Shown here: in pieces, positions 41,115-61,964 of the stretch
How the letters are laid out: each line of letters starts with the position of its first letter
How positions within the stretch are numbered: the first letter of the stretch is position 1
DNA from: Heptranchias perlo
Lineage: Eukaryota
Direction: 5' to 3'
Assembly (NCBI RefSeq): GCF_035084215.1
Contig: NC_090340.1
Location: 18,972,001 to 19,036,000, forward strand
Length of the DNA: 64,000 bases
Translations under genes and position numbers: made by a program
Notes under the pieces: generated by a model
The model's input: only the letters and a program-made list of their open reading frames with translations
Database searches by the model: none
What the model was told of the DNA's origin: nothing

Positions 41115-41321
41115 TCAGGTGCGCGGAGGGCCCCTCTCTCTGCCCTGGTGCTGTTTGAATTGCGGTGTTGCATAAACAGCCTTTCCATCTCTCTGCTGCT
41201 TTCTCGGTGGCACGTGGGGGCATGCTGATCTCTTGTCCACATGTTGGGGCTTTTTGACTTTCGCAGTGCTGGTGAAATCTATAGCAGTATACACCATCCT
41301 GTTAGCTGGTCTCTGCATACT
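41115..41321 (-). CDS. IgSF receptor terminal cytoplasmic exon with ITIM-like tyrosines
   Basis: Acceptor attatctcgcag, phase 0; SMQRPANRMVYTAIDF...KAVYATPQF...PPRT*. Confidence 0.8.
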   Translation of the reverse strand, partial: SMQRPANRMVYTAIDFTSTAKVKKPQHVDKRSACPHVPPRKQQRDGKAVYATPQFKQHQGRERGPPRT

Positions 41322-41394
41322 CTGCGAGATAATAGTATAAAAGAGAGTGATAAGATTTTGACTTGTAGACAACATTAAAATCCCCAGAGACAAT

Positions 41395-41980
41395 GGGGTC
41401 AATTTTCACTCCCTCATGGGGCCGGTAGCCTCACCTTAACCCCTTAACACCAGCGATGTGGCCGGCACCATTTTAAAAGGGGTCAACGGCCAGGTGTCCA
41501 TTGCGCCCACCTGTTTCAGTAGATAGGCCCCTTTTAATATGGAAATCGGGGTCCTGTGACTTAAATAGGACCCTGATTGCCATTTTAGGTAGTAACATTG
41601 TCCAAGCCTGCGCAGTGCAGGGTTCGACCAGTTCCACAGGCAATGGAAGAGAAGAGGCCCAGCAAAAATAGGTCTTGAATTATTTTTGTGGCAAGCAGGA
41701 GTGCACACAAAATTAATCTGGGCTGCTGCCCTCCCGGGACCCCCACCCTCTTCAATCGTGACCCCTGTTTCCCGCCCCCCCCCCTCCCCGACTTACCTTC
41801 CTGGCGCTAACTCCGGTCCGTTTTCCTTTACCGAACCTGGCGAGCTGTGTCGGAAGCCTGTCTGTCTCCCCACAGCCCACCTGGTGAATGCAGATGAGGC
41901 CGGAGCCTCAAAATCTCGGGGCCGCTTCGCCACCAGAATGGAGCGCGCTGGTCGGCCGCCCAAAGGACAAAATAGATCCC
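41395..41980. mobile_element. Degenerate MITE / non-autonomous DNA transposon
   Basis: Imperfect termini ggggtcaatttt / aaaatagatccc around a GC-rich body. Confidence 0.5.
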
Positions 41981-42174
41981 AATGGCTCTTTTCTCTGATT
42001 CGCTGATAGAATTCATTTTAAAAATGGTGATTAAGATCTAATCTTTATCGTAATTTATGAATGGCCAGTATCCTGCCTGGCTGACTGGTGCATTTTCCCA
42101 GGGCCCTATGTTGCAGCTGCCAGGAGGCTGATCATCATATTGGGGGAAGGAGTTACACATCTAGAGTGTTAACT

Positions 42175-43119
42175 GACCATATGACCATAAGACCATAAGA
42201 GATAGGAGCAGGAGTAGACCATTCGGCCCCTCGAGCCTGCTCCGCCATTCAATGAGATCATGGTTGATCTGATTTTTACCTCAACTCCACTTTCCCACCT
42301 TTTCCCCATATCCTTTGACTCCCTTGCTGATCAAAAATTTGTCGAACTCAGCCTTGAATGTGTTCAATGACTCATCCTCCACAGCTTTTTGGGGTAAAGA
42401 ATTCCAAAGATTCACAAGTCTCTGGGAGAAGAAATTCCTCCTCATTTCTGTTTTAAACAGGCGACCCCTTATTCTGAGACTATGCCCCCTAGTTTTAGAT
42501 TTCCCCCATAAGGGGTAACATCCTCTCAGCATCTACCCTATCAAGTCCCCTCAGAATTTTATATGTTTCAATAAAATCTACTCTCATTCTTCTGAACTCC
42601 AATGAGTATAGACCCAAACTGTTCAATCTTTCTTCATAAGAAAACCCTTCCATACCCGCAATCAACCTAGTGAACCCTCTCTGAACTGCCTCCAATGCAA
42701 CTATGTCCTTCCTTAAATAAGGGACCAGAACTGTACACAGTACTCCAGGTGTGGTCTCACCAGCATCCTGTACAATTGTAGCATAACTTCCCTGCTTTTG
42801 TACTCCATCCCCCTAGAAATAAAGGCCAATATTCTGTTTGCCTTCCAGATTACCTGTTGTACCTGTATGTTGATTTTTTGTGTTACATGTATGAGGACAC
42901 CCAGATCCCTCTGTACTGCAGTACTTTGTAGTATTTCTCCATTCAAATAATATTTTGCTTTTTTATTTTTCCTCCCAAAGTAGATGACTTCACATTTTCC
43001 CACATTCTATTCCATCTGCCAAATTTTTGCCCATTTGCTTAACCTGTCACTATCCCTTTGCAGACACTTTGTGTCCTCATCACAACTTGCTTTTCCACCA
43101 CCTTTGTATCATCAGCAAA
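42175..43119 (-). mobile_element. CR1 3' portion
   Basis: ORFs 42713-43003 and 42495-42695; repeated accataag tail. Confidence 0.88.
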
Positions 43120-43155
43120 GATTACAAATAAAGAAGGAAGAGCATTAATTCAGCA

Positions 43156-45301
43156 ACAGATCTAGCAGCTCAAAACTGGGCGTCCATGAGGCGCTGTGAG
43201 CCATCAGCAGCAGCAGCAAAATTGTATTCCAGCACAATCTGTAACCTCATGGCCCGGCATATTCTTCACACTACCAGTACCAACAAGCCAGGGGATCAAC
43301 CCTGGTTCAATGAGGAGTGTAGAAAAGCATACCAGGAGCAGCACCAGGTGTACCTAAAAATGAGGTGCCAACCTGGTGAAGCTACAACACAGGACTACAT
43401 CCATGCTAAACAGCGGAAGCAACATGCAATAGACAGAGCTAAGTGATTCCACAACCAATGGATCAGAACAAAGCTCTGCAGTCCTGCCACATCCAGTCGT
43501 GAATGATGGTGGACAATTAAACAACTAATGGGAGGAGGATGCTCTGTAAATATCCACCTCCTTAATGATGGCGGAGTCCAGCACGTGAGTGCAAAAGACA
43601 AGGCTGAACTATCTTCAGCCAGAACTGCCGAGTGGATGATCCATCTCTGCCTCCTCCCGATATCCCCACCATCACAGAAGCCAGTCTTCAGCCAATTCGA
43701 TTCACTCCACCTGATATCAAGAAACGGCTGAGTGCACTGGATACAGCAAAGGCTATGGGCCCCGACAACATCCCAGCTGTAGTGCTGAAGACTTGTGCTC
43801 CAGAACTAGCTGCGCCTCTAGCCAAGCTGTTCCAGTACAGCTACAACACTGGCATCTACCCGACAATGTGGAAAATTGCCCAGGTATGTCCTGTCCACAA
43901 AAAGCAGGACAAATCCAATCCGGCCAATTACCGCCCCATCAGTCTACTCTCAATCATCAGCAAAGTGATGGAAGGCGTCGTCGACAGTGCTATCAAGTGG
44001 CACTTACTCACCAATAACCTGCTCACCGATGCTCAGTTTGGGTTCCGCCAGGACCACTCGGCTCCAGACCTCATTACAGCCTTGGTCCAAACATGGACAA
44101 AAGAGCTGAATTCCAGAGGTGAGGTGAGAGTGACTGCCCTTGACATCAAGGCAGCATTTGACCGAGTGTGGCACCAAGGAGCCCTAGTAAAATTGAAGTC
44201 AATGGGAATCAGGGGGAAAACTCTCCAGTGGCTGCAGTCATACCTAGCACAAAGGAAGATGGTAGTGGTTGTTGAAGGCCAATCATCTCAGCCCTAGGAC
44301 ATTGCTGCAGGAGTTCCTCAGGGCAGTGTCCTAGGCCCAAGCATCTTCAGCTGCTTCATCAATGACCTTCCCTCCATCATAAGGTCAGAAATGGGGATGT
44401 TCGCTGATGATTGCACAGTGTTCAGTTCCATTCGCAACCCCCCAGAAAATGAAGCAGTCCGTGCCCGCATGCAGCAAGACCTGGACAACATCCAGGCTTG
44501 GGCTGATAAGTGGCAAGTAACATTCGTGCCAGACAAGTGCCAGGCAATGATCATCTCCAACAAGAGAGAATCTAACCACCTCCCCTTGACATTCAACGGC
44601 ATTACCATCGCCAAATCCCCCACCATCAACATCCTGGGGGTCACCTTTGACCAGAAACTTAACTGGACCGGCCATGTAAATACTGTGGCTGCAAGAGCAG
44701 GTCAGAGGCTGGGTATTCTGCAGCGAGTGACTCACCTCCTGACTCTCCAAAGCCTTTTCACCATCTACAAGCCACAAGTCAGGAGTGTGATGGAATACTC
44801 TCCGCTTGCCTGGATGAGTGCAGCTCCAACAACACTAAAGAAGCTCGACACCATCCAGGATAAAGCAGCCCGCTTGATTGGCACCCCCACCCACCACCCT
44901 AAACATTCACTCCCTTCACCACTGGCGCACAGCGGCTGCAGTGTGTACCATCCGTAGGATGCACTGCAGGAACTTGCCAAGGCTTCTTCGACAGCATCTC
45001 CTAAACCCGCGACCTCTACCACCTAGAAGGACAAGCAGCAGACACATGGGAACAACACCACCTGCACGTTCCCCTCCACGTCACACACCATCCCGACTTG
45101 GAAATATATCGCCGTTCCTTCATTGTCACTGGGTCAAAATCCTGGAACTCCCTTCCTAACAGCACTGTGGAGAATCTTCACCACATGGACTGCAGCGATT
45201 CAAGAAGACGGCTTACCACCACCTTCTCGAGGGCAATTAGGGATGGGCAATAAATGCTGGCCTTGCCAGCGAAGCCCACATCCAATGAATGAATAAAAAA
45301 A
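43156..45301 (+). mobile_element. Second-family LINE copy (paralog of 27345-29807)
   Basis: Near-identical RT text (NYRPISLL, MFADD) and the same gaataaaaaa tail. Confidence 0.92.
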
Positions 45302-45650
45302 GATTGTTATGACACTAAATTTTCTTCATCATTGATTTGGTTTCCCCTTCATTCCTGTTGCATAAGCAAGAAGATAAATTAAAAGTTGCATGATAGTGGA
45401 TGGGCCATGGGTAAAGCTGTAGTAATGAGTGGTTTGAATTAGAAAGGCCACAGGTTCGACCCCTGGCCTGTGCAAAGTTAGCTGATCTCTGAAGAGCAGC
45501 AGTTTTGCTCCAGTGTCCCAGACATTGGTGTGGAGCAAATTCAATCAGGACTGCTGCTACTCATTATTGAGAGTCAGACCTCTGTTGGAAAAGATGAGGA
45601 AGGGATCGAGTGTGGTGCTTTCCATAATTGAACAGCCTGCTGACACACAG

Positions 45651-46319
45651 GCCCCGATTTTAAAACCCCTCTCCCCCAACCCCCATCTCCCCTCCCACCT
45701 GGCAGAAACTGGGCGAGGGGAGGGGGGGGGGCAGTTAAAAGAAGGGCAGCGACTTACCCATTGTGTCCTGATATTAACCTGCAAGAAGGCAGCGGGGGTC
45801 CTGCTTTAAATGTACAGATCGAGTTCCGACGACAACAGGATCAGGATGACAATTTTAGTGGGAGGCCTGAGCGGGGAAGCAGTGACTGCTTCACCATCAG
45901 CCCAAATCTGCCGGGAGGTGGATCGTGGGCCAGAAGAAGCACAGGCAGGTAAGCTTTAAAATACTTTTTAGGTTTCCTTGTGGGTCAGGAGGAATAGGAG
46001 AGCTCCTCCAGTCCCCACAAGGAAACCTTGGGCTTTGCTTTCCCTGGGCTTCCCCCTGCCTCACACTCTTCACCACCACCACCACCACTTATCTGACTGC
46101 CGGTAACCTTTCCCTCGGGTCCCACCAGCGACCTCCTGCTCCCCGAATTCCCGCTCCCGTCCGCCAGCCAGGTAACGGATCTGGCCGGGTTTGGGCAGGT
46201 TTTATGGAAATGAGGCCCGGCTGTTAAAATCGGCCGGGCCTCAACGTCTTCATTGTTTCCAGGTGCCCTGTCTGCTTCGGGGCTTGCACGCATTTCCACC
46301 CCCGTTAAAATTGGGGTCA
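45651..46319. mobile_element. MITE / non-autonomous DNA transposon
   Basis: TIRs GGCCCCGATTTTAA / TTAAAATTGGGGTC. Confidence 0.7.
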
Positions 46320-46629
46320 TACTGCTGAGGCTCATGCATGCAGAGTCACTTGAAAAGGTACCAGAGGGAACCCAGAGCCTATCGAACTGTATCCCAGCAC
46401 AAGTTAGTACTTTCAGCAAAATGAGGAAAAATATTTTTTTATATATAAAAAATTCAAGCCATGTCTATGATCCAGAATGTACACAGTCAGATACAATGAA
46501 AAAGCTTTGCTGCGTGATCTCAATTTTCTTTTTCGTTCTCCACACTTAGGACATTTTATTCGAAACAAAACAAAACTCATTTTAAACAAAATTCAGAGCA
46601 GTTGATAAAAAGGATTTTTGTCAACTTAC

Positions 46630-46673
46630 CTGATTTTCCTGAACACGTCTTTCCTCTGCTTTTCTCCCTTTGC
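46630..46673 (-). CDS. IgSF receptor short juxtamembrane cytoplasmic exon (GKGRKAEERRVQENQ)
   Basis: Acceptor cttattctcaaccag and donor CAG|GTAAGT; phases 1/0 link the TM exon to the terminal exon. Confidence 0.8.
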
Positions 46674-47220
46674 CTGGTTGAGAATAAGTTAATAGTAAAT
46701 AATATGACCTTAAACAAATTCTGTGGCAGATAGGAACAGGTAGAGCAGCAAATTGCCTTTCAAAGTACCATTGAGTTTGACCTACAGCAATTAATGGAAC
46801 TATCTCAATTTTGCAATCTAGTAGAACACTATTAGAAATGTGAATGACACGGCCATATAACGTTTAAGAAATCCTGATGATTTGCCTGAGCAAATAAAAT
46901 ATTTTAATTTGCAAACCCAATGCGTACCAGAGGCATAAATATAACCAGAAATTTTCACTCTCAATCATTTCTCATCACATGCTCAATCAGAAACCAAATC
47001 TATAGATCAGTTCAGAACAATCTGACTAATATCAGTTGGAAATTAAATTAGTCTCATTAATTACTACAGTTAGTCCCAGCTAGTGGTCAATGCATCTAGT
47101 CTCAGTTATGAATTAATCTAACTAGGTTTAGTTATTAACTAACCTGCCTTGTTTGTTTACCTATCAAATTAGCTTCAACATAACTAACCGATCCCATATC
47201 TAGATCATGAAAGAAGGCAA

Positions 47221-47574
47221 GAGTGATCCCTAATATCTAGAATTGTGAGGGGAGGCGAGAGTGGTCCCTAATATCTAGATGGTGAGGGGAGGAGAGAGTG
47301 GTCCCTAATATCTAGATGGTGAGGGGAGGAGAGAGTGGTCCCTAATATCTAGATGGTGAGGGGAGGAGAGAGTGGTCCCTAATATCTAGATGGTGAGGGG
47401 AGGAGAGAGTGGTCCCTAATATCTAGATGGTGAGGGGAGGAGAGAGTGGTCCCTAATATCTAGATGGTGAGGGGAGGCGAGAGTGGTCCCTAATATCTAG
47501 ATGGTGAGGGGAGGCGAGAGTGGTCCCTAATATCTAGATGGTGAGGGGAGGAGAGAGTGGTCCCTAATATCTAG
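47221..47574. repeat. 37-bp minisatellite, about 10 copies
   Basis: Unit gagagtggtccctaatatctagatggtgaggggagga. Confidence 0.95.
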
Positions 47575-48120
47575 GAGGATAGTAATCCCTAAACTAGGTT
47601 GTGAGCTGATATAGTCCATGGCCTTTAGATATAGTGGGGCTGGTAGACCTTTAGCCTGGTGCAGCCTACGTAACTTGGATGGATAATAATGTAACTGCTA
47701 GTCCTTTGGTGCTATTGATAAAGTGCAGCATATAGTGTTTTAAACTGCTCTTTAGAAAATCCAACATGATGGAAACACTGCTGAGATAATGGAGAGTTGT
47801 CACAATCTTGTCTGTAGGCCTGCAAGGAAACATCAGGATGCCAAGGCAGCACAGCGTATCCCTCCTTGCATTATTTATATATACCACTCTTCTCCATCAC
47901 ATCCCCCAGTAACAGGACAGAGCTAGGCTGCAGTACTGTAGTGAGGAAGCTGTAATATTATGATAGACAATGCAATACATGATGTAAATGGCTCTGGCAG
48001 TGTTCCAGTCTTTTGCCTCTCTTGAAATAACTGAGATATTATAATATTTACTCCATTCACATGTCAAACTAGCAATTGAAGAGGTTGTCTAGTGATGTAT
48101 AGAAAATGCTGTATTATTCA

Positions 48121-48856
48121 CCAACAACAACTACTACTTGGATTTATAAAGCGCTTTTAACATAGTTAAACATCCCAAGGTGCTTCAAAGAAGCGCTTTC
48201 AAACAAAATTTGACACCGAGCCACATAGAGACATTGGGACAGGTGACCAAAAGCTTGGTCAAAGAGGTAGGTTTTAAGGAGCGTCTTAAAGGAGGAGAGA
48301 GAGGGAAGAGGTTTAGGGAGGGAGTTCCAGAGCTTAAGGCATAGGCAGCTGAAGGCACGGCCGCCAATGGTGGAGCGATTAAAATCGGGGATGCAAAAGA
48401 GGCCAGAATTGGAGGAGTGCTGAGATCTCAGGGTTGTGGGGCTGGAGGAGGGTACAGAGGTAGGGAGGGGAGAGGCCATGGACAAATTTGAAAACAAAGA
48501 TGAGAATTTTTAAATTGAGGTATTGCCGGACCGGGAACCAATGTAGGTCAGCGAACACAGGGGTAATGGGTGAACGGGACTTGGTGTGAGTTAGGATACA
48601 GATAGCAGAGTTTTGGATGAGTTCAAGTTTATGGAGAGTGGAAGATGGGAGGACAGCTAGGAGAACATTGGAATAAGAAAGACATGCATTTATATAGTGC
48701 TTTTCATGACCTCAGGTCATCCCAAATCGCTTTGCAGCCAATGAAGTATTTTTGAGGTGTAGTCACTGTTGTAATGTAGGAAAGTCTAGTCAAGTTTAGA
48801 GGTAACAAAGGCATGGCTGAGGGTTTCAGCAGCAGATGAGCTGAGGCAGGGGCAGA
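48121..48856 (-). mobile_element. L2 3' fragment with a nested SINE tail (about 48680-48782)
   Basis: Reverse complement of the L2 end at 29965-30710. Confidence 0.8.
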
Positions 48857-49056
48857 CCACAGAAGAGTATCAACGTCCCCACTGTTACGAAACTCTCCTC
48901 AGTCTTCACTGAATTTATTCCATTTTTAAATCCAGACTTCAGACAAACATAATTCATTTACAATATCACTTCAGTTCATTATAACTTGTATTTTTATAAT
49001 TTAAAATATATTGAAAATTCTAAATTTATCAGTTTAGCAAAATATGGTACGCTTAC

Positions 49057-49170
49057 CTCTGCTTACACAGAATTTACAAAGTATTGGTGTAATAATCAGG
49101 AGCAGCAGGAGGAGTACTCCACTCCCCATACAGACATAGATCCACCAGGGCAAAACATCTGATTCTCTCT
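49057..49170 (-). CDS. IgSF receptor transmembrane exon
   Basis: Acceptor tttgcattttgcag and donor AG|GTAAGC; phase 1/1; ERESDVLPWWIYVCMGSGVLLLLLIITPILCKFCVSR. Confidence 0.88.
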
Positions 49171-49757
49171 CTGCAAAATGCAAATACATCACTCAATGTA
49201 ATAGTTATATCAACCACAGGAAATGTGGGAACAATACAATACATGCATGTTTCAGTACTTAATTCAAACACTGATATACAAAGTAACAAATGTGATTTAA
49301 TCTGTCAATACCACATCCTGGTTAGTAAACATGGTGGTTACAAATAATACTTGTTTTAAACAAAACGTATGTTTGTAAAATTAAGTTTTTTTTTATTTGT
49401 TCATGGGATGTGGGTGTCGCTGGTGAGGCCGGCATTTATTGCCCATCCCTAATTGCCCTTGAGAAGGTGGTGGTGAGCCGCCTTCTTGAACCGCTGCACT
49501 CTGTGTGGTGAAGGTTCTCCCACAGTGCTGTTAGGAAGGGAGTTCCAGGATTTTGACCCAGCGACGATGAAGGAACGGCGATATATTTCCAAGTCGGGAT
49601 GTTGTGTGACTTGGAGGGGAACGTGCAGGTGGTATTGTTCTCATGTGCCTGCTGCCCTTGTCCTTCTATGATGTGGAGATGCCGGTGATGGACTGGGGTT
49701 GACAAATGTAAACAATCTTACAACACCAAGTTATAGTCCAACAATTTTATTTGAAAA

Positions 49758-49794
49758 TCACAAGCTTTCAGAGGCTTCCTCCTTCATCAGGTGA
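49758..49794 (-). ncRNA. Minimal hammerhead ribozyme motif
   Basis: Minus strand TCAC-CTGATGA-A-GGAGG aag CCTCT-GAAA-GCTT-GTGA. Confidence 0.62.
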
Positions 49795-51134
49795 ATGTCA
49801 GGAAATCCTTGAATGTTTCGCATTTATATTCAGAGAACAATACCTGGTGATTACAGATAATCTTTCCAACTGCCCGTTGTCAAGGCAATCAAAGTGTTCA
49901 GACAGAGAGGTGTTACCGACAGGACCACTGAATATACAAACGGCCAGAACACAAAACAGAGAGAGAGAGGGAGACACATCCAAAAGGAAGAGAAAGACAG
50001 AAAATGACCCGTTGAATTAAAAACAGATAACTTTTATTCGCTGGTGGGGTTACGTGTAGCGTGACATGAACCCAAGATCCCTGGTTGAGACCGTCCTCAT
50101 GGGTGCGGAACTTGGCTATCAATTTCTGCTCGACGATTTTGCGTTGTCGTGTGTCTCGAAGGCCGCCTTGGAGTACGCTTACCCGAAGATCGGTGGCTGA
50201 ATGTCCTGGACTGCTGAAGTGTTCCCCGACTGGGAGGGAACCCTCCTGTCTGGCGATTGTTCCGCGGTGTCCGTTCATCCGTTGTCGCAGTGTCTGCATG
50301 GTCTCGCCAATGTACCATGCTCCGGGGCATCCTTTCCTGCAACGTATGAGGTAGACAACGTTGGCCAAGTCACAGGAGTATGAACCATGTACCTGGTGGG
50401 TGGTGTCCTCTCGTGTGATGGTGGTATCTGTGTCGATGATCTGGCATGTCTTGCAGAGGTTGCTGTGGCAGGGTTGTGTGGTGTCATGGACGCTGTTCTC
50501 CTGGAAGCTAGGTAATTTGCTGCGAACGATGGTCTGTTTGAGGTTGGGTGGCTGTTTAAAGACAAGTAGTGGAGGTGTGGGGATGGCCTTAGCGAAGTGT
50601 TCTTCGTCATGGAGCATGGTACATTGGCGAGACCATGCAGACACTGCGACAACGGATGAACGGACACCGCGGAACAATCGCCAGACAGGAGGGTTCCCTC
50701 CCAGTCGGGGAACACTTCAGCAGTCCAGGACATTCAGCCACCGATCTTCGGGTAAGCGTACTCCAAGGCGGCCTTCGAGACACACGACAACGCAAAATCG
50801 TCGAGCAGAAATTGATAGCCAAGTTCCGCATCCATGAGGACGGCCTCAACCGGGACCTTGGGTTCATGTCACGCTACACGTAACCCCACCAGTGAATAAA
50901 AGTTATCTGTTTTTAATTCAACGGGTCATTTTCTGTCTTTCTCTTCCTTTCGGATGTTTCTCCTTCTCTCTGTTTTGTGTTCTGGCCGTTTGTATATTCG
51001 GTGGTCCTGTAGGTAACACCTCTCTGTCTGAACACTTTGATTGCCTTGACAATGGGCAGTTGGAATGATTATCTGTAATCACCAGGTATTGTTCTCTGAA
51101 TATAAATGCGAAACGTTCAAGGATTTCCTGACAT

Positions 51135-51171
51135 TCACCTGACGAAGGAGGAAGCCTCCGAAAGCTTGTGA
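51135..51171 (+). ncRNA. Minimal hammerhead ribozyme motif
   Basis: TCAC-CTGACGA-A-GGAGG aag CCTCC-GAAA-GCTT-GTGA. Confidence 0.68.
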
Positions 51172-52679
51172 TTTTCAAATAAAATTGTTGGACTATAACT
51201 TGGTGTTGTAAGATTGTTTACACTTGTCCTTCTAGGTGGTAGAGGTCCCGGGTTTGGGAGGTGCTGTCGAAGAGTTAGGAAGATATTGGGGCAATGGCTA
51301 GAAGAAAAAGGTTTTAAATTACCTTCTCCATCCTCTCCTATTATAGCCATGCCCTCTTCACTACACAAACTTGCCCTTCTCTGTGAGAGACCTGCACTCC
51401 CTCCCACTGCTCCTGTCAGCTCCTGGTAAAAATTTGTCGGTCATTGAAAATTAAACAATTTCTTCTTCAATTTCTAAAACACACCGACAGCAGGTTTCCG
51501 CCCCCCCCCCCAAAAATGTAAAACTATTGCTTCCTTAAAGAGGTCCTAATTTCATGAGAAGACATTTGGTAAGATATGTCTTTGTTTGCAAATACGAAGC
51601 AGCGTCACGAATCACATTAAAGTACATGTCTGATCATATCGTCGCAGCAGAAATTATGCTTTGCTCTTTTGGGTCTTCTCTCCCCAATAAAAATAGGTTT
51701 GCTAAATACTATCTCATGAAGACCTTTAAAGCGAAGGCTAATGTAACCTACGTGGCTTTGATTTAAGGTTACTGTTAGAGCTGTGGTACTTTTTGTTAAG
51801 AAACAACGCACAGGTTGTATCTTAAATGCCCCTCTCCACCGCCGTTCATGCTGAAAGTGTGAGCGGGTGAAACTGTCCGCTTGAACTGACCCTGGTGAAT
51901 TTTCAAAAGTCCGTCTCATTTAAATACCTCCAGCGGACTCCTGGCCGGGGAGCTCTCCCCGGGGTGGGGTGGGTGGGAAGTGGTTGTTGCTGCAGGATTC
52001 TAATGCTTAAAGGCACAATCGCAGAAGTTTCCCCCTAGCTGGTGCGACTCAGAGAGGGAAATGCCCCTCTGAGGGACATTATAGAATCATACGGCACAGG
52101 AGGAGGCCATTCGGCCCATCGAGGCTCTGTGAAGGAACTATTCCATTAGTCGCACTCCCTCGCTCATTCCCCATAGCCCTGATTTTTTCCCCCCCTTTTC
52201 AAGTATATCTCCAATTCCCTTTTGAACGTTTCTGTTTTACCCCCTTTCAGGCAGTGCATTCAGATGGGAGGTACCTCTTCATTCAAGTCCCTGCGATGAC
52301 CATTGAACCTGCCCTCCTTGTTCCTCGTTACCGAGTAAGGCTGGGCGCCAGTTGAACGCTGGTCTGAGTCCTGTCTAGTGTTACTGAGGCGGGAATGACC
52401 CAAAATATCACCTTTTGATTCCACTCCTCAGTTAAATATCCCCGCACCTCCTTGGGTGGGCGCTCCTGGCGGGCGGCAGAACTGATGCCGGAAAACCCAG
52501 AACGGATCGGAATATTTCCGCTCAGACATCACCGGCAAAACAGCGGCATATCGGGAGAAATTTCCGCCCGCCGTGTCTTCTAGGAAAATCCAATGTGATA
52601 TAAATTCACTGTCAAACATCTTGTGCACATCAGACTAAATGTACACGTCTAGAGTTTGCGAATAATCTGTTAAAATTAC

Positions 52680-52985
52680 CTTCAGCACTGGAGGTGTAGG
52701 TGTAAAAGGCTTGAACTCGGCTGTTGGGATGGGAGACCCGACAGGTATAAACTGTCCCATTCTGAGCAGGCTGCGATTCCTCCAGATAGCCGGACACTTG
52801 GAAGAGCCCCCCTGGCCGTGGCTGTATATCTTTGCGGATCCCAGTTACAATTTCTGCACCGTTCACAAGCCAGTCGATGCTCAGCTCCTTGGAGTGAAAG
52901 CCGCCGGCTTTACAGGCAAGTCTGAGGAAAAGGGATGACTCTTTCCAAAACAGGGTGGGGACAATCTGAGGAGGATCAGGGGGAG
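52680..52985 (-). CDS. IgSF receptor C1-set domain exon
   Basis: Phase 1/1, 306 nt; L.C.A.GFH...I.W..NG...G.FQVSGYL...YTCRVSH is the C1-set signature. Confidence 0.92.
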
Positions 52986-53964
52986 CTTTAGGACATAACA
53001 GAAAGATCATGTTATTCTGATAATCGGCTTTGAATGAAAATTAATCTGATGTTATTCTTTTCCAGTTTTAATAATTTTCTCGATCCCATTTTACATTGAA
53101 ATGTTTGGCCATTTTCGCCCGACCCTAGTTTACATTGTAATATTGTTAATTACTTGTGAAGGGGGGGATCGGCGATCTCTGACATTCTACCCCCTTTAGA
53201 AACTCGGACAGAGGAAGATCCCGGCACTGCTGGGGTCAGTCACTGCTTCACAACCCCGAGAATCCCAACACTGACCGGTCCAGAATCAATATGCGACTCT
53301 TATTCGTGCAGCGTTCATTCTCGCGTGTAGTTGTCGCTATTTTTTTCTGTGCGTTAGTTTTACCGAAATCGTTATATCTCCGACCGATGAAATGTACAAA
53401 AGGCCGCTTGTTGTGCGCCTTCTGTTTTTGATTGAGATAAACAGCCCGAGAAGATATTTAATTTATCTACTCAGACACTGTATGAACTAGCCCGCTGAAA
53501 GCAGAACTTCGGTTCACAGTGTAAGCATGAACACCGGTTACACTCCGGTTCCAAATGAAGTGAAAGGTCGGTTTCATACACACACACACACACATATAAT
53601 GAATAAATGCAGATCCATTGAGAATTATTTGGATTAATTCACTAATTCGAGTCTCTCAATCACACCGAGTCCCCAGACTTGGTTATAAGTCAATTCAATA
53701 ATATTGATTAATATATTGCTGGTTGCCGTGCTCTTGGACCGGGGAGGTTTCCCGGACGCCCGGTTCCAGCAGAGATAGGGAGCAGCACCTCACCCCTCTT
53801 CAGCCGCTACCCTTCCCTTTTCTGGGCGCACCCATTCTGATATTGAAGGGCAGTCGGACTGAGTGAACTTAACCTCCCGCCGGGAAAGATATTTAACTCT
53901 GAATAACACGGGAGCGCATATCCGGTATATTAATGTCGCTGTTTTTATATAAACTCCACTCTCA

Positions 53965-54985: not shown

Positions 54986-54998
54986 CCCCTCTTGGGTC

Positions 54999-55178
54999 GA
55001 AACAGTGACAGGGTTCAGTACCCAGGAGGGGTTAGAAGGGAGTTTATATAGAAACAGTGACAGGGTTCAGTACCCAGGAGGGGTTAGAGGGGAATTTATA
55101 TAGAAACAGTGACATGGTTCAGTACCCAGGAGGGGGTAGAGGGGAATTTATATAGAAACAGCAACAGGGTTTCGTACA
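54999..55178. repeat. 52-bp tandem repeat, about 3.5 copies
   Basis: gaaacagtgacagggttcagtacccaggaggggttagaggggaatttatata starting at 54999, 55051, 55103, 55155. Confidence 0.9.
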
Positions 55179-55649
55179 TAATCTCACCTCTGAGGTACTA
55201 AGCTATTTTTATAGAGTGGGTTTGTTAGGCCGAATAGACTCTTTGTTTCTATGTTTAGTTATCTTTTTATATTGCCCTTTTCAGGCTATGTATTATTTCA
55301 TATACAAGTCCCTGTCAGGTGTCGCTAAACACTGGCACTAGGTCCTTTCTGTTTGTGGGTACACTTTGTAAGTGCTCCAATGTAGGGGGTCTAATAAATG
55401 GTTAATAACTCAATTGTTGTAACTGGTTTCCTGTTTTACTCATTCACTATCGGTTGTTGAGGTAGAACATGTTGATTGGGTCGGATGTGGCACCAGTAAC
55501 AGGCATTCCACGTCTACTGTCAGAGCAATAGACACAGCGCCTACAGCAGTGAATGAATCTTGAAATAACACCGTGGGGTGCCAGTCAATAAATTCTTAAC
55601 GTGTTCATCTGAAATTCCTTCCTCTATTATTTTAGCAGGTTTCCCACTA

Positions 55650-56865
55650 TTTAGTCAAGTTCTCTGATATTCTAAGCTCTTTCTTGACCCCCTCCATCCT
55701 CTCCAACTACCATCCATCTCTAACCTTCCTTTTCTCTGAGACGCATCGTTGCCAAACAATTACATTCCCATCTGTCCTATCATTCCCCGCCCGTGACCCC
55801 TCAATGAGCTCCTGCAGCATAAAATCACGCTGGTCGAAGTAACGAATAACGTTGTACGTAACGGAGACCACGGTTGGCTGTCCCGTAACCTCTCCACTGC
55901 CATCCCCCTCTAACAGCTCCCTCACACTGTGTATATCCATGGTATTGCTCTCTCAGGGTCCCAATCCTACTTATCATTTCATAGAAATTATACTGTCACC
56001 AGCTGCTTCTTTTCACATGTCTGCTCTATCCCTGTACTCGATGCGTGGCTTCTTTCCATTCATTTATATGCTATTCCTTTGCAAAATCATCTGGAGGCGT
56101 GGGGGCATGTGCACTGATGATACTCCGTTCTGACTCTCGACCTCCTCCCTTGACCCCCAAGGCCGTCACCACCTCTCCATCTGCTTTTCATATTAAGATA
56201 TGGATCTGCCAAAACTGCCTCTGGTCAGTAGAATTGAAGCTATCTTCAGTTCTTACAAACCCCTACACACCACCAACCTGTCCAGCGGCCTCCTCGGGTC
56301 AAGCCTAGAAATGTGGAGCCTTCGTGTACTGCTCGATTCCAAGCTCAATTTTCTACCCAACATCCGATCAAGACCATTATAGCTCTAACACCGCAAGCCT
56401 CTGTCTTCGCCTCTCCCCCTCTGCTGCCAAAGCATCGTTAACATCACCACCTCTCCAATCAACTAAAACTCGTCCAAAACAGTCCTCATCTTTACACCCA
56501 TCACCCAGTCTATGTCAAGGTCTATTGGCTCTCCATACTCCAGCCAATTGACTTTAATATCTTCATCCTTGCCTTCAAATCCCTTAGTTGCCTCCCCATT
56601 TCGGTGATGTCCAGCCGGCCGTACGTTCCTACATACACCCCAGCCCCCCACTCGTCCAGCACCGTCCCTGTTGTTCGATGCCCCGTCGGTGGTCACCCTT
56701 TCAGCCCCCTGGAACACCCTCTCCGACACACACCATTTTTTCAATTCTTTTTTTCCTGCTTCCCCCCTCCTGCTCACAATCTACTCCCAGTCCAGTGTCC
56801 CGTAAAGCGCTCTGAGACGATTCTCTGCATGTGGGGAGCGGTACATAAATGCAAGTTATTATTGC
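55650..56865 (+). mobile_element. Old degenerate L2 remnant
   Basis: Pyrimidine-rich L2-like text ending in ataaatgcaagttatt. Confidence 0.55.
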
Positions 56866-58604
56866 TAAAATAGCACAAGGAATGCGAGAATCTGAGAAAT
56901 TCTGAGTACACTGGTATCCCATAATAATTTCAACAGCCCGAATGCGCCTGTTATATGGGATAATGTTAGTAGGTTAAAATACGATTTACAAATGGGTTCG
57001 TACCAGTAACCCAACAGTTGAAACCGTACATTCCAGTATTATTCACCAATCTGTCCGCTATTTTAGCAGCAAAGCCCTTGCTGACTGATGCTGTTCGATT
57101 TGAAACCCTCAGCGACCCTTCTTTCTAAAGGGCGCAAGTCTCAGATCTCAGGAGCGTGGGCCGCCGATCGCCACTTGAAGTAATTTAGTTGTTGAAGAAA
57201 TTTTACATCAACAATGTGTTTTTCAAAATCGAAAATGTCATGAATAACTTCAATGTAGCGTGAAACTGACGAGTTTCTGGTCTTCCTGCGAAATGTAAAA
57301 CACAACCCAGCGAGTAATAGACCCTGCTCTGTTTCACGGTTTAATGTCCTGACACTGTACAGGCCTCTCCTGCACGGCTCGGTTGAGAAGTTGTACTTAC
57401 ACAAGGAGAGGCAAGAAATCCCGAGAGAAGTGGAGGCAGTGAGTTGTGCATAGGGAGCAGTCGAAGAAATGAAGAATGCAGCTCAAATGTCCAAATAAAC
57501 AGACACACGAAGCCACGTGAAAGATCGATTCACAGTCTCACCCCCTTATACCAGTGATCATGTTTAAAATATCTGAAGAATAAATCATTTCCCTCTGGGA
57601 GGTGGCGCGCAATATAGGTTATTCTGAACATTAGATTTCACCACGTGGAACTTCGGATTGAGACTGTAATTGTTGGAACCTCTCCTGTAGATAAGGGTTG
57701 CATCGCTCCTTTCAATGAGATCGGAATTATTTCTTCTTGTATCTAATATTCTGGGAATGTTTCCGATTATTTTGACATTAAATCCAGTTCAAAATTAGGA
57801 GCAACGCTTGTCAGATTATGGGAGCGAAAAGCGGAGGTAAACCTCACTTGTATAAAATGAACAAGTTAATACCTCCGTTAAAATAACCAATAGAGGAATT
57901 TGATATATTACAATATTACAAATTAAAATAAACGGGTTAACTTGATAAATCCGCCAACTGTTGGGATATTATAGCATAAAATAAACGGGTTAATACCTCT
58001 GTAAAACAAACAGGAATTTAATACAAAATGTCAAATGTTGGGACATTGAGTATAAAACAACGGGTTAATCCACCCGTTAAATAACCGATAGAGCAATTTT
58101 GATACATACCATAATATTCCACTATGTAATTTCCAGGCTAAAGTTTTTTTTAAAAACCTCTCAACACACACCTTTGCAGATTTATTCACTTTTCATTTGC
58201 TGATTGTATGAATTTTGGAAATACTTTGATTTGGGGCTTTTATTCGTTTTGTTCAGTTAAACATCTTCCTTGTATTTTTGGTGGGGAGCTGGAGCGGAGA
58301 GGGGATAAACCTTGCCGATCACATCAGACACACCGCGTGTCTCCGGGTGAGGCGACCTAATATTGAATAAAAAATCAGGGAATTGAGGGGGGGGGGCTGG
58401 GAAATCAGTTATTGCTCAGATAAAAATAATTAAAAATTGACTGGCAATATTTTAAAATCGGTGAATTTATCGAAGAAAGTGGGTAAGAATTCAACTTGAA
58501 GGGAAGGACTGTGGGTCGCTCCCATTACACGGGATAGTTCACCTGGGTTAAAAGGGACCAGATTCTACCTAGACTAGAAAACTAGCAAACTAGAAAAGTC
58601 CAGT

Positions 58605-59000
58605 CTCCGCTGTGGGTAAAGCAGTCAGTGGGGTTTTACTGGAGGCCCTTTGGTCCGCCCGAAACCTGCTGGTCTTCCAGCTGAAGGAACTGTCCATGAC
58701 CGAGTGTTGCCGACTGGCAGGCTCCAAGGTCCAGGAGTACGTGCTGCGGGACGCAGTGAGGCGAGCTGCGACCTACCGCAAAGACTCTATGGGGAAAGGC
58801 CACCGTGTAAGGCCCCCCCATCTTGTATTGTACACCATGAGTTTTGAGAAATATCGTGTTTGAATTATAATAATGAGATGGCTTTGTGTATGATCTGTAG
58901 TGTTTTTGGTTTGAATTGTACTGGTATGGACTTGTGATATTTACATTGAACTGTGTGTATCTTTAAATTCGATAAAATAAAGTATATTTTGAATTTTTTT
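58605..59000 (+). mobile_element. Tx1/L1-clade LINE 3' end
   Basis: EALWSARNLLVFQ..ELS.TECCRLA.SKVQEYVLRDA C-terminus, followed by a T-rich 3' UTR and AATAAA. Confidence 0.7.
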
Positions 59001-59377
59001 TTTACTGGGAACTACACTGCCATGTGGGGCCAGGGATTTTATAGGCATGCGACCCGCCATCGGGTCATTGCCCACAGGGAAATCCTTCAGCTCTCTGCGG
59101 CGCTGGTGCTGCACCGAGAGCTCAGTTCGATACAATTCAGGGTTTCTTGTTTTACTACAGAGGGGCACTGGCCTGACTCTGCAAGTGGCTTAAAATCTCC
59201 TTTTGCAGAGACTTTTTTGTAGCCCTGTTTGTAGGAGAAGCCTGAAATTTATGGTGCAATGGATTGTGGAAGAACCCAGTTACTGTCTGTAACTTTTCCC
59301 TCTTTAAACTCTCACCAATACTTATTGAGTATAATGATCCCAGTCTCAATAACAGAAATGACCGAATCCCAGATCTG

Positions 59378-60140
59378 TGTCTGGATTTACTGGATCACGG
59401 GTCTGTCAGTCTGGGCTCACTGGATCGCAGGTCTGTCAGTCTGGGCTCACTGGATCGCAGGTCTGTCAGTCTGGGCTCACTGGATCCTGGGTCTGCCAGT
59501 CTGGGCTCACTGGATCCCGGGTCTGCCAGTCTGGGCTCACTGGATCGCGGGTCTGCCAGTCTGGGCTCACTGGATCGCGGGTCTGTCAGTCTGGGCTCAC
59601 TGGATCCCGGGTCTGCAATGTCTGGGCTCACTGGATCCCGGGTCTGTCAGTCTGGGCTCACTGGATCCCGGGTCAGTCAGCCTGGGCTCACTGGATCCCG
59701 GGTCAGTCAGCCTGGGCTCACTGGATCGCGGGTCTGTCAGCCTGGGCTCACTGGATCGCGGGTCTGTCAGCCTGGGCTCACTGGATCGCGGGTCTGTCAG
59801 CCTGGGCTCACTGGATCGCGGGTCTGTCAGCCTGGGCTCACTGGATCGCGGGTCTGTCAGCCTGGGCTCACTGGATCGCGGGTCTGTCAGCCTGGGCTCA
59901 CTGGATCGCGGGTCTGTCAGTCTGGGCTCACTGGATCGCGGGTCTGTCAGTCTGGGCTCACTGGATCGCGGGTCTGTCAGTCTGGGCTCACTGGATCGCG
60001 GGTCTGTCAGTCTGGGCTCACTGGATCGCGGGTCTGTCAGTCTGGGCTCACTGGATCGCGGGTCTGTCAGTCTGGGCTCACTGGATCGCGGGTCTGTCAG
60101 TCTGGGCTCACTGAATCCCGGGTTTGTCAGTCTGGGCTCG
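59378..60140. repeat. 30-bp minisatellite, about 25 copies
   Basis: Unit gggtctgtcagtctgggctcactggatcgc; explains the repetitive ORFs in several frames. Confidence 0.97.
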
Positions 60141-60411
60141 CTGCCGTGGCACAAACCACACCTGGTCAGTTCGGTACATCCTGAGCAAGCCAGTGTCAGC
60201 ACTGGGCACTGATTTCAGTGTAAGCTTGGAACATTGCCGCTGCTGTAATTCATCTCCCTCTGACTTAACTTGTAATGTCGGTGATATCTGTGAATGTCTG
60301 AAGAACTGAACAGGATGTCCCTTCAGTGATGGCAAGAGCTGCAGCTATATTTCCAGGATTGCTCCCGCTACACGGGATATTTTCATTTGGGGATTTAAAT
60401 GTGACACTCAC

Positions 60412-60729
60412 CAGATACCAGAAGCCTTGTGCTGGTCCCATTCCCCGCTTTGCCGTCGTTGTTTACTCTGCAGTAATAGAGCCCGGCGTCCTGGACACCC
60501 ACATTCAGGAGGTGAAAGGCGGCGCTGACTTTATTCCGAATTTCAAACTGATACCTGCTGTCACTTTTTGTCTCTAGGAATCTCTGCTCACCATCTCTCC
60601 ACCAGCACACTTGGACTTTTTCTCTAGCTTGGGCAAGTGAGAAGGTGCAATAGAAGGTCGCATTGGCTCCGCTAGTGACGTTTAGGATTTCGGGGAACTG
60701 ACCGACATGGAGCTTGGGATTCCCGGTAA
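60412..60729 (-). CDS. IgSF receptor V-type domain exon (germline-joined VJ)
   Basis: Phase 1/1, 318 nt; VGQFP..LNV..G.NATFYC...W...D.GLYYC..., ending GNGTSTRLLVS in the same exon. Confidence 0.93.
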
Positions 60730-60731
60730 CT

Positions 60732-60800
60732 GTAGGGAAAGAAAGAACTTGCATTTATATAGCGCCTTTCACAGCCTCAGGATGCCCCAAAGCACTTCAG
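60732..60800 (-). mobile_element. SINE/L2 3' tail abutting the V-exon acceptor
   Basis: Minus strand aagtgctttggggcatcctgaggctgtgaaaggcgctatataaatgcaagttctttcttt, same tail as about 6500-6557. Confidence 0.8.
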
Positions 60801-60929
60801 ACCCAAATGTGAGCAGGGCACCATGGAGAGATAATTAGATAAACAAGTAAAAAGGAGAAAGCTTTAAGGGGAGGGGGGAAGAAACAAAGTAAAAGTCAAA
60901 CAAACAAACAAAAAATCAGGATTGGTTAA

Positions 60930-61260
60930 TCATAGTATCATAGGTATAGCACAGGAGACGGCCATTCGGCCCATTGTGCCTGTGCCGGCTCTTTTTGGAA
61001 AGAGCTACCCAATTAGTCCCATTCCCCCCCGCACTGTCCCTATAGCCCTGTAAATTTTTCCCTTCAAGTATTTATCCAATTCTCTTTTGAAAATTACTAT
61101 TGAATCTGCCTCTACCGCCCTTTCGGGCAGTGCATTCCAGATCATCACAACTCGCTGTGAAAAAAAATGTTTCCTCATGTCGCCTCTGGCTCTTTTTGCC
61201 AATCACCTTAAATCCGTGTCCTCTGGTTACCCACCCTTCTGCCACTGGATACAGTTTCTG
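60930..61260 (-). mobile_element. CR1 3' fragment
   Basis: Matches 22541-22850. Confidence 0.85.
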
Positions 61261-61332
61261 CTCATTTGTTCTTAATAATAGATATTTATTTAAAGAATAC
61301 GTTTTCCATTCTGGGGAGACGGGTTGACCCAC

Positions 61333-61387
61333 CTGTGGAGAGGATTCCCAGGCTCAGCACCAACTGCTGTGCGCTTCTGGTTAACAT
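61333..61387 (-). CDS. IgSF receptor leader (signal peptide) exon
   Basis: ATG at 61387; MLTRSAQQLVLSLGILST plus phase-1 donor CAG|GTGGGT, joining the V exon as ...ILSTVTG-NPKL. Confidence 0.8.
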
Positions 61388-61964
61388 GTCGAGCGGCGGC
61401 AGTTAGACGGGTCACTGAGCGCAGCTGGCGGTGGGGAGCAGATAAGCCGGAGCTCCCCGCCTGAAGCTGCGGTTTGCAGAAAGCGCCTGGCTTTCGTTCG
61501 TTGGTTGCCAGGGCTGCAGATGGAGCATCGGCCACACAAAAGAGTGCGCTGAGAAACTGCTAGATCTGCCCGAAAGATAAAAGCGGAAATATTATCAGAG
61601 GTTCATTCACCACCGCCCCCCACCTCCCCCCCTCACCCCTCCTCCCTCCCCCCCTCACCCCTCCTCCCTCCTGCCCGCCGTGTCAGCACAGCCGACTGCC
61701 AACACTCAGAATTAACCGCGACTTTCCGTGACGCCGGCTGCCCGGATCCCTCACCGTGTCCTGGGATAAGGCCACCTCCCCCTGGAGGAGATCTCACCCC
61801 CACCCCGAATCAGACCCGGAGATCCCGCCCCATTGAGTGAAACCCCGGGCTCTCCACAGTGCAGGGAGGGAGAGCAACGCCACCGAGCAACCCGGGAGCT
61901 TTCAACCTTTCTCACCCTGGGGGGGTTCACCCCGAGTCCATCAGTCCAGACCACCCCCCCCCCC

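Follow-up and report, generated by a model that had tools for sequence, protein, structure and literature searches.

A transcribed V-C1 membrane protein gene of the shark Heptranchias perlo is a divergent member of a large cartilaginous-fish family

Non-rearranging genes that combine a V domain with a C1-set domain bear on several immune receptor families, and one such gene appears to lie on chromosome sequence NC_090340.1 of Heptranchias perlo. The DNA analysed is a stretch of 64,000 nucleotides (the window), and all positions below are counted from its first letter. Does the window encode an expressed receptor, and, if so, is that receptor a relic of the ancestral antigen receptor, a relative of a known family such as SIRP, or something else? 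The first-pass annotation had joined six minus-strand exons with canonical splice sites into a 347-residue type I membrane protein. The exons, together with the minimum extent of the 3′ UTR, are as follows.

61333..61387, minus strand: exon 1, coding part; ATG and 18 signal-peptide codons plus 1 nt, with a GT donor; corresponds to residues 1-18 of database protein P0001
60412..60729, minus strand: exon 2; V-set domain and J-like G strand (…YYCRVNNDGKAGNGTSTRLLVS) in a single exon
52680..52985, minus strand: exon 3; single C1-set domain (…YTCRVSHP…); its junction to exon 4 is seen in an RNA contig
49057..49170, minus strand: exon 4; short stalk, uncharged transmembrane (TM) helix (PWWIYVCMGSGVLLLLLLIITPIL) and juxtamembrane cysteines (CKFC)
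46630..46673, minus strand: exon 5; 14 cytoplasmic residues, basic or acidic (KGRKAEERRVQENQ), with a phase-0 end
41115..41321, minus strand: exon 6, coding part; cytoplasmic tail (ITIM-like motif RMVYTAIDF, followed by KAVYATPQF, a second and degenerate motif) and stop codon
40842..41114, minus strand: 3′ UTR, putative minimum extent, unmapped and derived from overhang arithmetic on the RNA contig

The borders of all six exons were read, giving AG acceptors for exons 2-6 and GT donors for exons 1-5. Exon lengths of 55, 318, 306, 114, 44 and 207 nt yield intron phases of 1, 1, 1, 1 and 0. The 347-residue database protein P0001 contains the in-frame peptides of all six exons in order (residues 1-18, 20-124, 126-226, 228-264, 266-279 and 280-347), with one split-codon residue exactly between each pair of phase-1 neighbours. 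Because the exon peptides are collinear with P0001, an independent annotation arrived at the identical model, and the proposed gene structure is upheld. The leader is split, since its final residues (VTG) sit in exon 2. Next come a V domain whose exon also encodes the J-like G strand, a single C1-set domain, a TM segment with no charged residue and a tail with one ITIM-like motif (MVYTAI). Exon 2 is a single open exon in which the V and J-like parts are contiguous, with neither a gap nor a recombination signal sequence (RSS) between them, unlike the separate RSS-flanked segments of rearranging Ig and TCR genes. The exons, domains and database protein thus agree with the architecture originally described.

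Expression of the gene is evident from a contig of 1267 nt at depth 113 (run X1, record 2). It maps to 49056-49170 (record positions 524-638) and, directly adjoining, to 52680-52986 (record positions 639-945), and it thereby carries the exact junction of exons 3 and 4 with the 3.5-kb intron absent. The record has an unmapped overhang of ~322 nt at its 5′ end and another of ~523 nt at its 3′ end. By arithmetic, the former matches exon 2 plus 4-5 nt and the latter matches exons 5 and 6 plus ~272 nt of UTR. Only the exon 3-exon 4 junction is seen directly, and the other four therefore rest on this arithmetic, on P0001 and on homologues. Run X1 has no tissue attached and its label is a guess; we take it to be RNA because an intron-less contig of this length and depth, in a data set of 115 Mb, cannot be shotgun DNA from a large genome. 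A retrocopy is formally an alternative source of the contig. The gene is transcribed, and the splicing predicted for it is confirmed at one junction of five. The 3′ overhang of the contig stops at the start of a repeated element.

Both extracellular exons have clear domain assignments. Exon 2 matches the Pfam V-set family (E 2.9e-9) and exon 3 matches C1-set (E 9.5e-10); at E values up to 1, the latter retrieves nothing besides C1-set and ig. Folded alone, each exon is predicted to form an Ig sandwich (pLDDT 93.6 for V and 87.7 for C1). There is no further Ig-like open frame in the window and no second Ig exon in the 20-kb gene. Both Ig disulfide cysteines and the core tryptophan are retained, and the C1 motif YTCRVSH matches the Y.C.VSH of related proteins described below. 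The G-strand motif GNGTSTRLLV departs once from the family pattern GNGTG[ST]xLxV, with Ser replacing the second Gly. This GTG-to-GTS change, the replacement of FYP by FHS in C1 and an additional Cys preceding WW all affect positions that are otherwise invariant in the family, and such departures may reflect relaxed constraint.

Rather than being a unique relic, the gene belongs, as a divergent member, to a large family of V-C1 membrane proteins that do not rearrange and occur in sharks, rays and chimaeras. Searches with the window gene went exon by exon, and an exhaustive HMMER search with the V exon returned dozens of single-V matches, most of which carry J-like and C1 motifs and many of which also have a TM segment and tail tyrosine motifs. 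Every match that was looked up by name comes from a cartilaginous fish, and none of these looked-up matches is a bony-vertebrate protein of V(J)-C1-TM-ITIM architecture. Additional searches added further members to the family. The gene is one of dozens of paralogues. Automatic names within the family are inconsistent and include SIRP-alpha-like, tapasin-related-like, Ig-lambda-like, B7-H6-like (NCR3LG1-like) and CD276-like, the commonest being 'tyrosine-protein phosphatase non-receptor type substrate 1-like'. The forecast that automated annotation would mistake such genes for Ig light chains was correct, in that some relatives are named 'immunoglobulin lambda-1 light chain-like', among other labels. 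No solved relative is close enough to confer membership in a known family; the nearest are NKp30 for the V domain alone, and SIRP-alpha, B7-H6, UrIg2 and Ig chains for V-C1.

Two other lineages of the family help to place the gene. Lineage A is expanded, and its tails contain repeated ITIM and ITSM units. Lineage B is a conserved single-copy lineage whose branching matches the species tree and whose tails have been stripped of every tyrosine; examples are Heptranchias P0171, Heterodontus P0168, Hemiscyllium P0035, Pristis P0209 and Callorhinchus P0178. The window protein shares with lineage B its exon-level architecture, a PWWIY.C segment in the TM region and a Cys-rich juxtamembrane region, and aligns with it over the full length including the end of the tail, but identity is just 34-38%. 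In a V+C1 maximum-likelihood tree confined to family members, the window protein groups with lineage B (99/93) on a long branch (0.79), outside the 12 elasmobranch orthologues of that lineage (100/99).

In a tree of V domains alone, the window V pairs with that of Heterodontus P0186 (94/84), to which it is 57% identical (next best, 47%), and this pair is sister to the lineage B V domains (95/82). Since Heterodontus carries both P0186 and the lineage B gene P0168, the window lineage and lineage B are paralogues. P0186 is possibly a chimeric gene model, and its V exon is the sole evidence for an orthologue of the window gene. A frog NKp30-like V domain also falls among the shark V domains in this tree, on a long branch.

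In the tail, the segment MVYTAIDFTSTAKVKKP aligns with the lineage A ITIM unit, and KAVYATPQF corresponds both to the ITSM position of lineage A and to KVNDTAPK, a stretch of lineage B that has no tyrosine. Relative to lineage A, one ITIM-like unit is kept and the ITSM position is degenerate, whereas lineage B has neither; the unit of ~13 residues is absent there, and Asn or Asp stands where the window protein has Tyr. The V-C1 ectodomain would bind a cell-surface or soluble ligand. The uncharged TM segment offers no basis for pairing with ITAM adaptors, and thus any signal would pass through the phosphorylated tyrosine of RMVYTAI, recruiting SHP-type phosphatases. However, the motif is non-canonical, with Met at −2, and the second motif (AVYATP) matches no SH2 consensus. 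With this residue in the only ITIM, a degenerate second motif and a sister lineage that does without tail tyrosines, inhibitory signalling can be suggested only weakly. The protein might be a weak inhibitory receptor that is part-way along a loss of signalling completed in lineage B. Of the inhibitory tail proposed at the outset, the tyrosine motif itself is present, but the role depends on one non-canonical motif that the sister lineage has lost.

The explanation that best accommodates these observations, to which we assign a probability of roughly 0.7, is that the locus is a functional, transcribed gene for a type I membrane glycoprotein of the V(J-like)-C1-TM family, and that it is an old paralogue, sister to lineage B and distinct from lineage A, encoding a putative weak inhibitory receptor.

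Comparison with solved structures brings in NKp30 (NCR3; PDB 3noi, 6yjp), which has a non-rearranging VJ-type V domain like that of the window gene. It is the best single-domain sequence match of the window V in a PDB search (E ~2e-5) and the top Foldseek match (3noi_A, E 3.9e-8, TM score 0.80, 26% identity), and it is likewise the best single-domain match of the lineage B V. Its lead over other V domains is thin, and the family V profile does not favour it. NKp30 lacks a C domain, has a charged TM residue and signals via ITAM adaptors. Its V domain is followed only by a stalk and TM segment, whereas the window gene splices a C1 exon between V and TM and has no charged residue in the latter.

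The corresponding ligand offers an unlikely alternative, in which lineage B and the window lineage correspond, in cartilaginous fish, to B7-H6 (NCR3LG1; PDB 3pv6, 4zso) and are read by NKp30-like receptors, and the tail tyrosine is vestigial or reverse-signalling. B7-H6 has a V-C1 ectodomain and a TM segment, as does the window gene, and its tail carries an ITIM-like motif. Lineage B P0171 matches human B7-H6 chains at E 6.6e-14 to 1.2e-12; only an IgA heavy chain and SIRP-alpha rank higher, while light chains and TCR rank lower. Many relatives are automatically named NCR3LG1-like or CD276-like, and the atlas look-alikes of P0171 are CD80, CD276, PD-L1, butyrophilin and OX-2 clusters, although these serve as a lead only. 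Also, a single-copy lineage that tracks the species tree and has no signalling motif is what would be expected of a conserved ligand. Nevertheless, B7-H6 is not among the best 60 PDB matches of either the window V exon or the C1 exon, and with the family profile SIRP-alpha scores 107.5 bits while B7-H6 lies outside the best 60 (lowest, 89.5 bits). The C1 exon has no Pfam match beyond the two families noted above. The family V carries GxG, a J-like motif, and resembles NKp30, the receptor-side protein, which is the best match among single-domain chains for the window V and for the V of lineage B. Finally, the window gene retains its ITIM-like motif.

A broader scheme, which we consider distinctly doubtful, would make the window gene an unrecognised third ancient lineage of one VJ-C1 family, frozen midway between the ITIM/ITSM receptors of the SIRP-like lineage A and the tyrosine-less, B7-H6-like lineage B. 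If this were true, the gene would document a transition from receptor to ligand. If the V domains were in addition NKp30-like, then one non-rearranging VJ-C1 family would have given rise, in early jawed vertebrates, to receptors of the NKp30 type, ligands of the B7-H6 type and inhibitory receptors resembling SIRP.

It is very unlikely that the gene is a cartilaginous-fish orthologue or lineage of the inhibitory myeloid receptor SIRP, despite the prevalence of the phosphatase-substrate name in the family. SIRP-alpha and SIRP-gamma (PDB 2wng, 4i2x) do resemble the family: their V domain includes a J-like G strand, a C1-set domain comes immediately after it, and they have a TM segment and ITIM signalling. 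Both the family profile (E 7.6e-30) and P0171 (E 5.9e-15) align continuously across the V-C1 portion of SIRP-alpha, and SIRP clusters appear at 0.96 among the atlas look-alikes of lineage A, again as a lead only. However, SIRP has two C1 domains and the window gene has one, with no extra Ig exon to supply another. The SIRP-alpha tail carries four tyrosines, compared to one ITIM-like motif here. UrIg2 and Ig chains equal or outscore SIRP-alpha against the family profile, B7-H6 scores similarly to SIRP-alpha against P0171, and SIRP is absent from the best 60 PDB matches of the window V exon. 'SIRP-like' is therefore a reasonable description, given that SIRP-alpha ranks with the family's best V-C1 matches of solved structure, but the single C1 domain and a family confined to cartilaginous fish in these searches do not fit SIRP itself.

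Equally improbable is the proposal that the gene survives as a relic of the non-rearranging VJ-C1 gene ancestral to Ig and TCR, or is closely sister to that gene. The VJ-C1-TM chain architecture, split leader and phase-1 introns are in keeping with such an origin, and the family profile matches UrIg2 V-C1 at E 3.4e-35, with Ig chains also scoring strongly. These UrIg2 and Ig-chain scores are sums over several C1 domains, and the V profile is about equally far from IgL V, PD-L1 V, amphioxus VJ-C2 and TCR V. Single-sequence and fold searches rank NKp30 first. The gene has many paralogues that diverge quickly, a pattern seen in innate receptor families. PRARP reportedly has a non-rearranging VJ domain, a C1 domain in its fish, amphibian and reptile orthologues, a TM segment and a cytoplasmic ITIM, an architecture that would match that of the window gene. 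PRARP (Fu et al. 2019, J Immunol 202:1992) is cited in passages of PMC10751288 and PMC11599192.

The published ancestor candidates UrIg and UrIg2 (PDB 9dmx) share with the window gene a non-rearranging single-exon VJ, a split leader and a following C1. UrIg is secreted with three C1 domains and UrIg2 has nine or more (PMC12227049), so that each has at least three against one here, and neither is described with an ITIM tail (PMC12227049). Both are linked to the MHC or to the Ig/TCR cluster (PMC12227049), whereas the window holds no MHC or antigen-receptor gene. The idea of a relic predating RAG is not supported: the window V is no nearer to Ig/TCR V than to NKp30, PD-L1 and amphioxus VJ-C2, among family copies its J-like motif alone is degenerate, and, compared with its many paralogues, the gene shows no sign of standing closer to the ancestor of antigen receptors.

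Decay or loss of function in a gene that continues to be transcribed would account for the three departures at invariant positions, the degenerate tail motifs and the long branch, yet this is very unlikely given a 347-codon frame intact over six exons with canonical splice sites, a spliced contig of high depth, and retained Ig cysteines and core Trp in two exons that fold with high confidence. In addition to the V-C1 gene, the window holds an IBR-domain gene, transposon remnants and a putative MBTPS1-like last exon.

The window gene of Heptranchias perlo, which occupies six minus-strand exons from position 61387 to 41115, is a new and divergent member of the non-rearranging VJ-C1 inhibitory-type receptors and belongs to a large, inconsistently annotated family in cartilaginous fish. 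Read on the minus strand, all of its internal borders are canonical, with AG acceptors before exons 2-6 and GT donors after exons 1-5, and the exon sizes yield phases of 1,1,1,1,0. Exon-by-exon translation gives the following products.

Exon 1, minus strand, 55 nt: signal peptide
Exon 2, minus strand, 318 nt: V domain ending in …YYCRVNNDGKAGNGTSTRLLVS (Pfam V-set, E 2.9e-9)
Exon 3, 52680-52985, minus strand, 306 nt: C1 domain with …YTCRVSHP… (Pfam C1-set, E 9.5e-10)
Exon 4, 49057-49170, minus strand, 114 nt: stalk and uncharged transmembrane helix PWWIYVCMGSGVLLLLLLIITPIL, then CKFC
Exon 5, minus strand, 44 nt: short, charged segment
Exon 6, minus strand, 207 nt: tail of 68 residues with RMVYTAIDF and KAVYATPQF

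The first-pass annotation had proposed this in-frame, 347-aa model from the sequence, and the borders, the phases and an identical database protein (P0001) bear it out; translation and Pfam matches show that the architecture, with a leader, a V domain carrying its own G strand, a C1 domain, an uncharged transmembrane segment and a tyrosine-bearing tail, had also been read correctly. P0001 (347 aa) came from an exhaustive HMMER search in which the V exon was the sole query, and is 100% identical to that exon along its length. All six exon peptides are found in P0001 in the same order, with exactly one residue separating phase-1 neighbours, indicating that a public annotation pipeline arrived at the same model independently. 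The ectodomain carries four N-x-S/T sequons, there is no charged residue in the transmembrane segment, and the tail has two tyrosines. When every open frame in the window was checked for the Cys…Trp…Cys Ig signature, no further Ig-like exon came to light, either in the introns or elsewhere. The database queries were single exons or natural proteins from other species, and P0001 entered local comparisons only (alignment, pairwise BLAST, and trees with proteins already collected).

The window gene is real and expressed, and the splicing anticipated in the first-pass annotation is seen directly in RNA at the junction of exons 3 and 4. Exon 3 is present in three small sequencing runs from one sample. 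When mapped on 47001-53000, a 1267-nt contig from one of these runs (X1; depth 113) aligns through contig positions 524-638 with 49056-49170 and through 639-945 with 52680-52986, and it thus joins exon 4 directly to exon 3 with the 3.5-kb intron absent and at most one mismatch. A contig from a second run ends at 52680 and carries 29 extra letters. Because a depth of 113 is impossible for single-copy DNA of a large genome in a 115-Mb data set, the runs are taken as RNA; formally, a recent retrocopy could also have given rise to the X1 contig. Its unmapped ends measure ~322 nt and ~523 nt. By arithmetic rather than by observation, the first would correspond to exon 2 with 4-5 nt more, and the second to exons 5 and 6 followed by ~272 nt of UTR. 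The sequence ACAG upstream of exon 2 is common to the spliced and unspliced forms, and therefore an assembly would break at this point. By the same arithmetic placement, the 3ˊ end of the contig coincides with the start of a repeated element. No obvious poly(A) signal is present at this inferred 3ˊ end, which is probably a break at the repeat. Runs from a second organism (X4-X7), probably a related species, contain 1/12 of the exon 3 words, with coverage mainly over repeats.

Besides P0001, the V-exon search recovered dozens of proteins of 220-450 aa, each with a single V match at 35-48% identity. In most of these relatives a J-like and a C1 motif are present, in many a transmembrane segment as well. 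Those inspected carry GNGTG[ST]xLxV and …Y.C.VSH…, often with repeats of LxYAxLDL (ITIM) and TEYAxL (ITSM) in the tail; the J-like motif of the window gene is degenerate for the family, with GTS in place of GTG. Cluster look-ups place members in sharks (Heterodontus, Heptranchias, Mustelus, Carcharodon, Scyliorhinus, Hemiscyllium, Chiloscyllium, Stegostoma, Rhincodon, Cetorhinus and Pristiophorus), in rays (Hemitrygon, Hypanus, Mobula, Narcine, Amblyraja, Pristis and Leucoraja) and in the chimaera Callorhinchus, where several have consecutive accession numbers. Cartilaginous fish carry not one joined-VJ/C1 gene but a large family of them, distributed over all three groups.

In public annotation, members of this one family go by eight or more unrelated names. 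The automatic names conflict (SIRP-alpha-like, tapasin-related-like, Ig lambda-1-like, NCR3LG1-like, CD276-like, class II beta-like, NCR3-like), and the presence of Ig lambda-1-like among them matches, in relatives, the mislabelling as Ig light-chain-like that had been predicted. Beyond cartilaginous fish, the few hits looked up comprise a frog NKp30-like protein and reptile ITIM receptors with multiple V domains, none of which has the architecture of the window gene. Word-indexed searches with family profiles gave no strong match outside cartilaginous fish, although such searches are leaky and this is weak evidence. The family probably overlaps genes known in the literature as shark NCR3 or B7H6. 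Database searches for family members turned up no curated nurse-shark NCR3 entry, and searches of the open literature yielded no account of a V-C1-ITIM family in sharks.

Two branches of the family are relevant to the position of the window gene: an expanded lineage A with repeated ITIM/ITSM tail units, and lineage B, a conserved set of single-copy orthologues in sharks, rays and chimaera whose relationships follow those of the species, from Callorhinchus up to the carcharhiniform sharks. Members of lineage B are P0035, P0167-P0171, P0173-P0175, P0209, P0048, P0155 and P0178. Common to the window protein and lineage B are the PWWIY.C transmembrane segment, a juxtamembrane stretch rich in Cys and a tail end that can be aligned. 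Lineage B lacks any tail tyrosine. In the window protein, MVYTAIDFTSTAKVKKP aligns with the ITIM unit of lineage A, and KAVYATPQF aligns both with the lineage A ITSM position and with KVNDTAPK of lineage B.

The trees comprise proteins already collected and no outgroup families. In the maximum-likelihood tree of V and C1 together (70 rows), the window protein and lineage B form a clade (99/93), in which the window protein falls outside the 12 elasmobranch lineage B orthologues (100/99). Domain-wise BLAST gives 57% identity between the window V and that of the Heterodontus protein P0186, and at most 47% to any other; the window C1 reaches at most 44% identity to any protein compared. In the V-only tree, the window and P0186 V domains pair (94/84) as the sister (95/82) of the V domains of lineage B, among them that of Heterodontus P0168. 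Outside its V domain, P0186 is of the same type as the neighbouring lineage A proteins P0187 and P0188. Because both lineages are present in Heterodontus, the window gene is an old paralogue and not the lineage B orthologue. Its main use is as a comparison point that links the expanded, ITIM-bearing lineage with the conserved lineage in which signalling has been lost. P0186 itself, a Heterodontus francisci XP model named 'NCR3LG1-like isoform X2', joins a window-like V exon to lineage A-type C1, transmembrane and tail exons, which points to trans-gene alternative splicing or else to a wrongly joined model.

Of the relations to known families set out here, none is close or exclusive enough for membership. 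NKp30 is the best single-domain PDB match to the window V by sequence (E ~2e-5), and likewise to the lineage B V tested. In Foldseek, the V exon modelled by AlphaFold (pLDDT 93.6) matches NKp30 best (E 3.9e-8, TM 0.80, 26% identity), with a narrow lead over NCAM, CD79b, shark vNAR and light-chain V domains. The V-only family profile is about equidistant from IgL V, PD-L1 V, amphioxus VJ-C2 and TCR V. The window C1 is a typical C1-set domain, with sequence matches to Ig constant domains, MR1, beta-2-microglobulin and UrIg2, and fold matches to MHC class II beta-2 domains. With natural relatives as queries, the best solved matches to V and C1 together are SIRP-alpha (E 7.6e-30 with the family profile, 5.9e-15 with P0171, the lineage B protein of Heptranchias), UrIg2 and Ig chains and, for lineage B, also human B7-H6 (E 6.6e-14 with P0171). 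Multi-domain chains dominate when V-only and C1-only profiles are compared with the PDB, and these profiles do not tell the families apart. Language-model look-alikes, which serve as leads only, come from SIRP clusters in the case of lineage A and from B7-type clusters in that of lineage B. Lineage B may be the cartilaginous-fish counterpart of B7-H6.

Several assignments can be set aside on architecture. In UrIg and UrIg2 the C1 domains number at least three, compared to one in the window gene, and both genes adjoin the MHC or the Ig/TCR cluster (PMC12227049). SIRP has two C1 domains and the window gene has one, whereas NKp30 lacks a C1 domain and has a charged transmembrane segment, in contrast to the C1 domain and uncharged segment of the window protein. 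PRARP is a different case: its abstract reportedly describes a VJ-C1-TM-ITIM plan in fish, frogs and reptiles, which would be the same plan as that of the window gene. PRARP is listed among joined-VJ genes (PMC10751288, PMC11599192). There are hints that NKp30 proper is nested in the cartilaginous-fish V-C1 family. In the V-only tree, the long-branched V domain of a frog NKp30-like protein (P0129) clusters (94/90) with a subclade of shark sequences, among them the V-only TM-ITIM receptors P0084, P0120 and P0141.

The spliced transcript encodes a type I glycoprotein with a V-C1 ectodomain, of which the V domain would be the ligand-binding part. ITAM adaptors presumably could not be recruited through the membrane, and any signal would run via phosphorylation of the single ITIM-like tyrosine. 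ITIM units in the family often have Met at -2, as in RMVYATL of Callorhinchus. The main rival to an inhibitory-type receptor is a ligand-like, B7-type role, which comes to mind because the sister lineage B lacks tyrosines and resembles B7-type ligands, and which we regard as unlikely for the window gene. Non-rearranging genes with joined VJ and C1 (UrIg, UrIg2, PRARP, NKp30 and SIRP) are sought as witnesses of the origin of Ig and TCR. The window gene shows that a V-C1 architecture alone is no evidence for closeness to the antigen-receptor ancestor. The suggestion of the first-pass annotation that this gene is a candidate relic of the pre-RAG receptor is very improbable, because the gene is one among many diverging paralogues, its V domain lies no nearer to Ig/TCR than to V domains of other kinds, and the J-like motif it carries is the degenerate one of the family. 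On its own, the window gene raises no new question.

The surroundings of the gene in the window contain the following features.

236-511, plus strand: open frame with a transmembrane segment and a basic tail
11328-13727, plus strand: reverse-transcriptase frame
20631-21248, plus strand: IBR-domain open frame of 206 aa, an exon of an RBR-type gene (IBR, E 7.6e-7)
28770-29741, plus strand: reverse-transcriptase frame
28026-28313 and 43398-43805, minus strand: reverse-transcriptase frames
28947-29516 and 44388-44834, minus strand: reverse-transcriptase frames
59389-60143: minisatellite in intron 2 with 25 copies of a 30-bp unit (96% matches), lying ~270 bp downstream of the V exon
61956-62334 and 62513-64000: C-rich 24-bp array and long 30/89-bp array, from ~570 bp upstream of the start codon to the window end

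The open frame at 236-511, which had initially been taken as the end of MBTPS1, has no significant match in Pfam or PDB. Reverse-transcriptase remnants are numerous in the window, and their open frames include one of 800 aa (RVT_1, E 3.6e-34) and a second RVT_1 frame. One element family is represented by near-identical pieces in both the intergenic region and intron 5.
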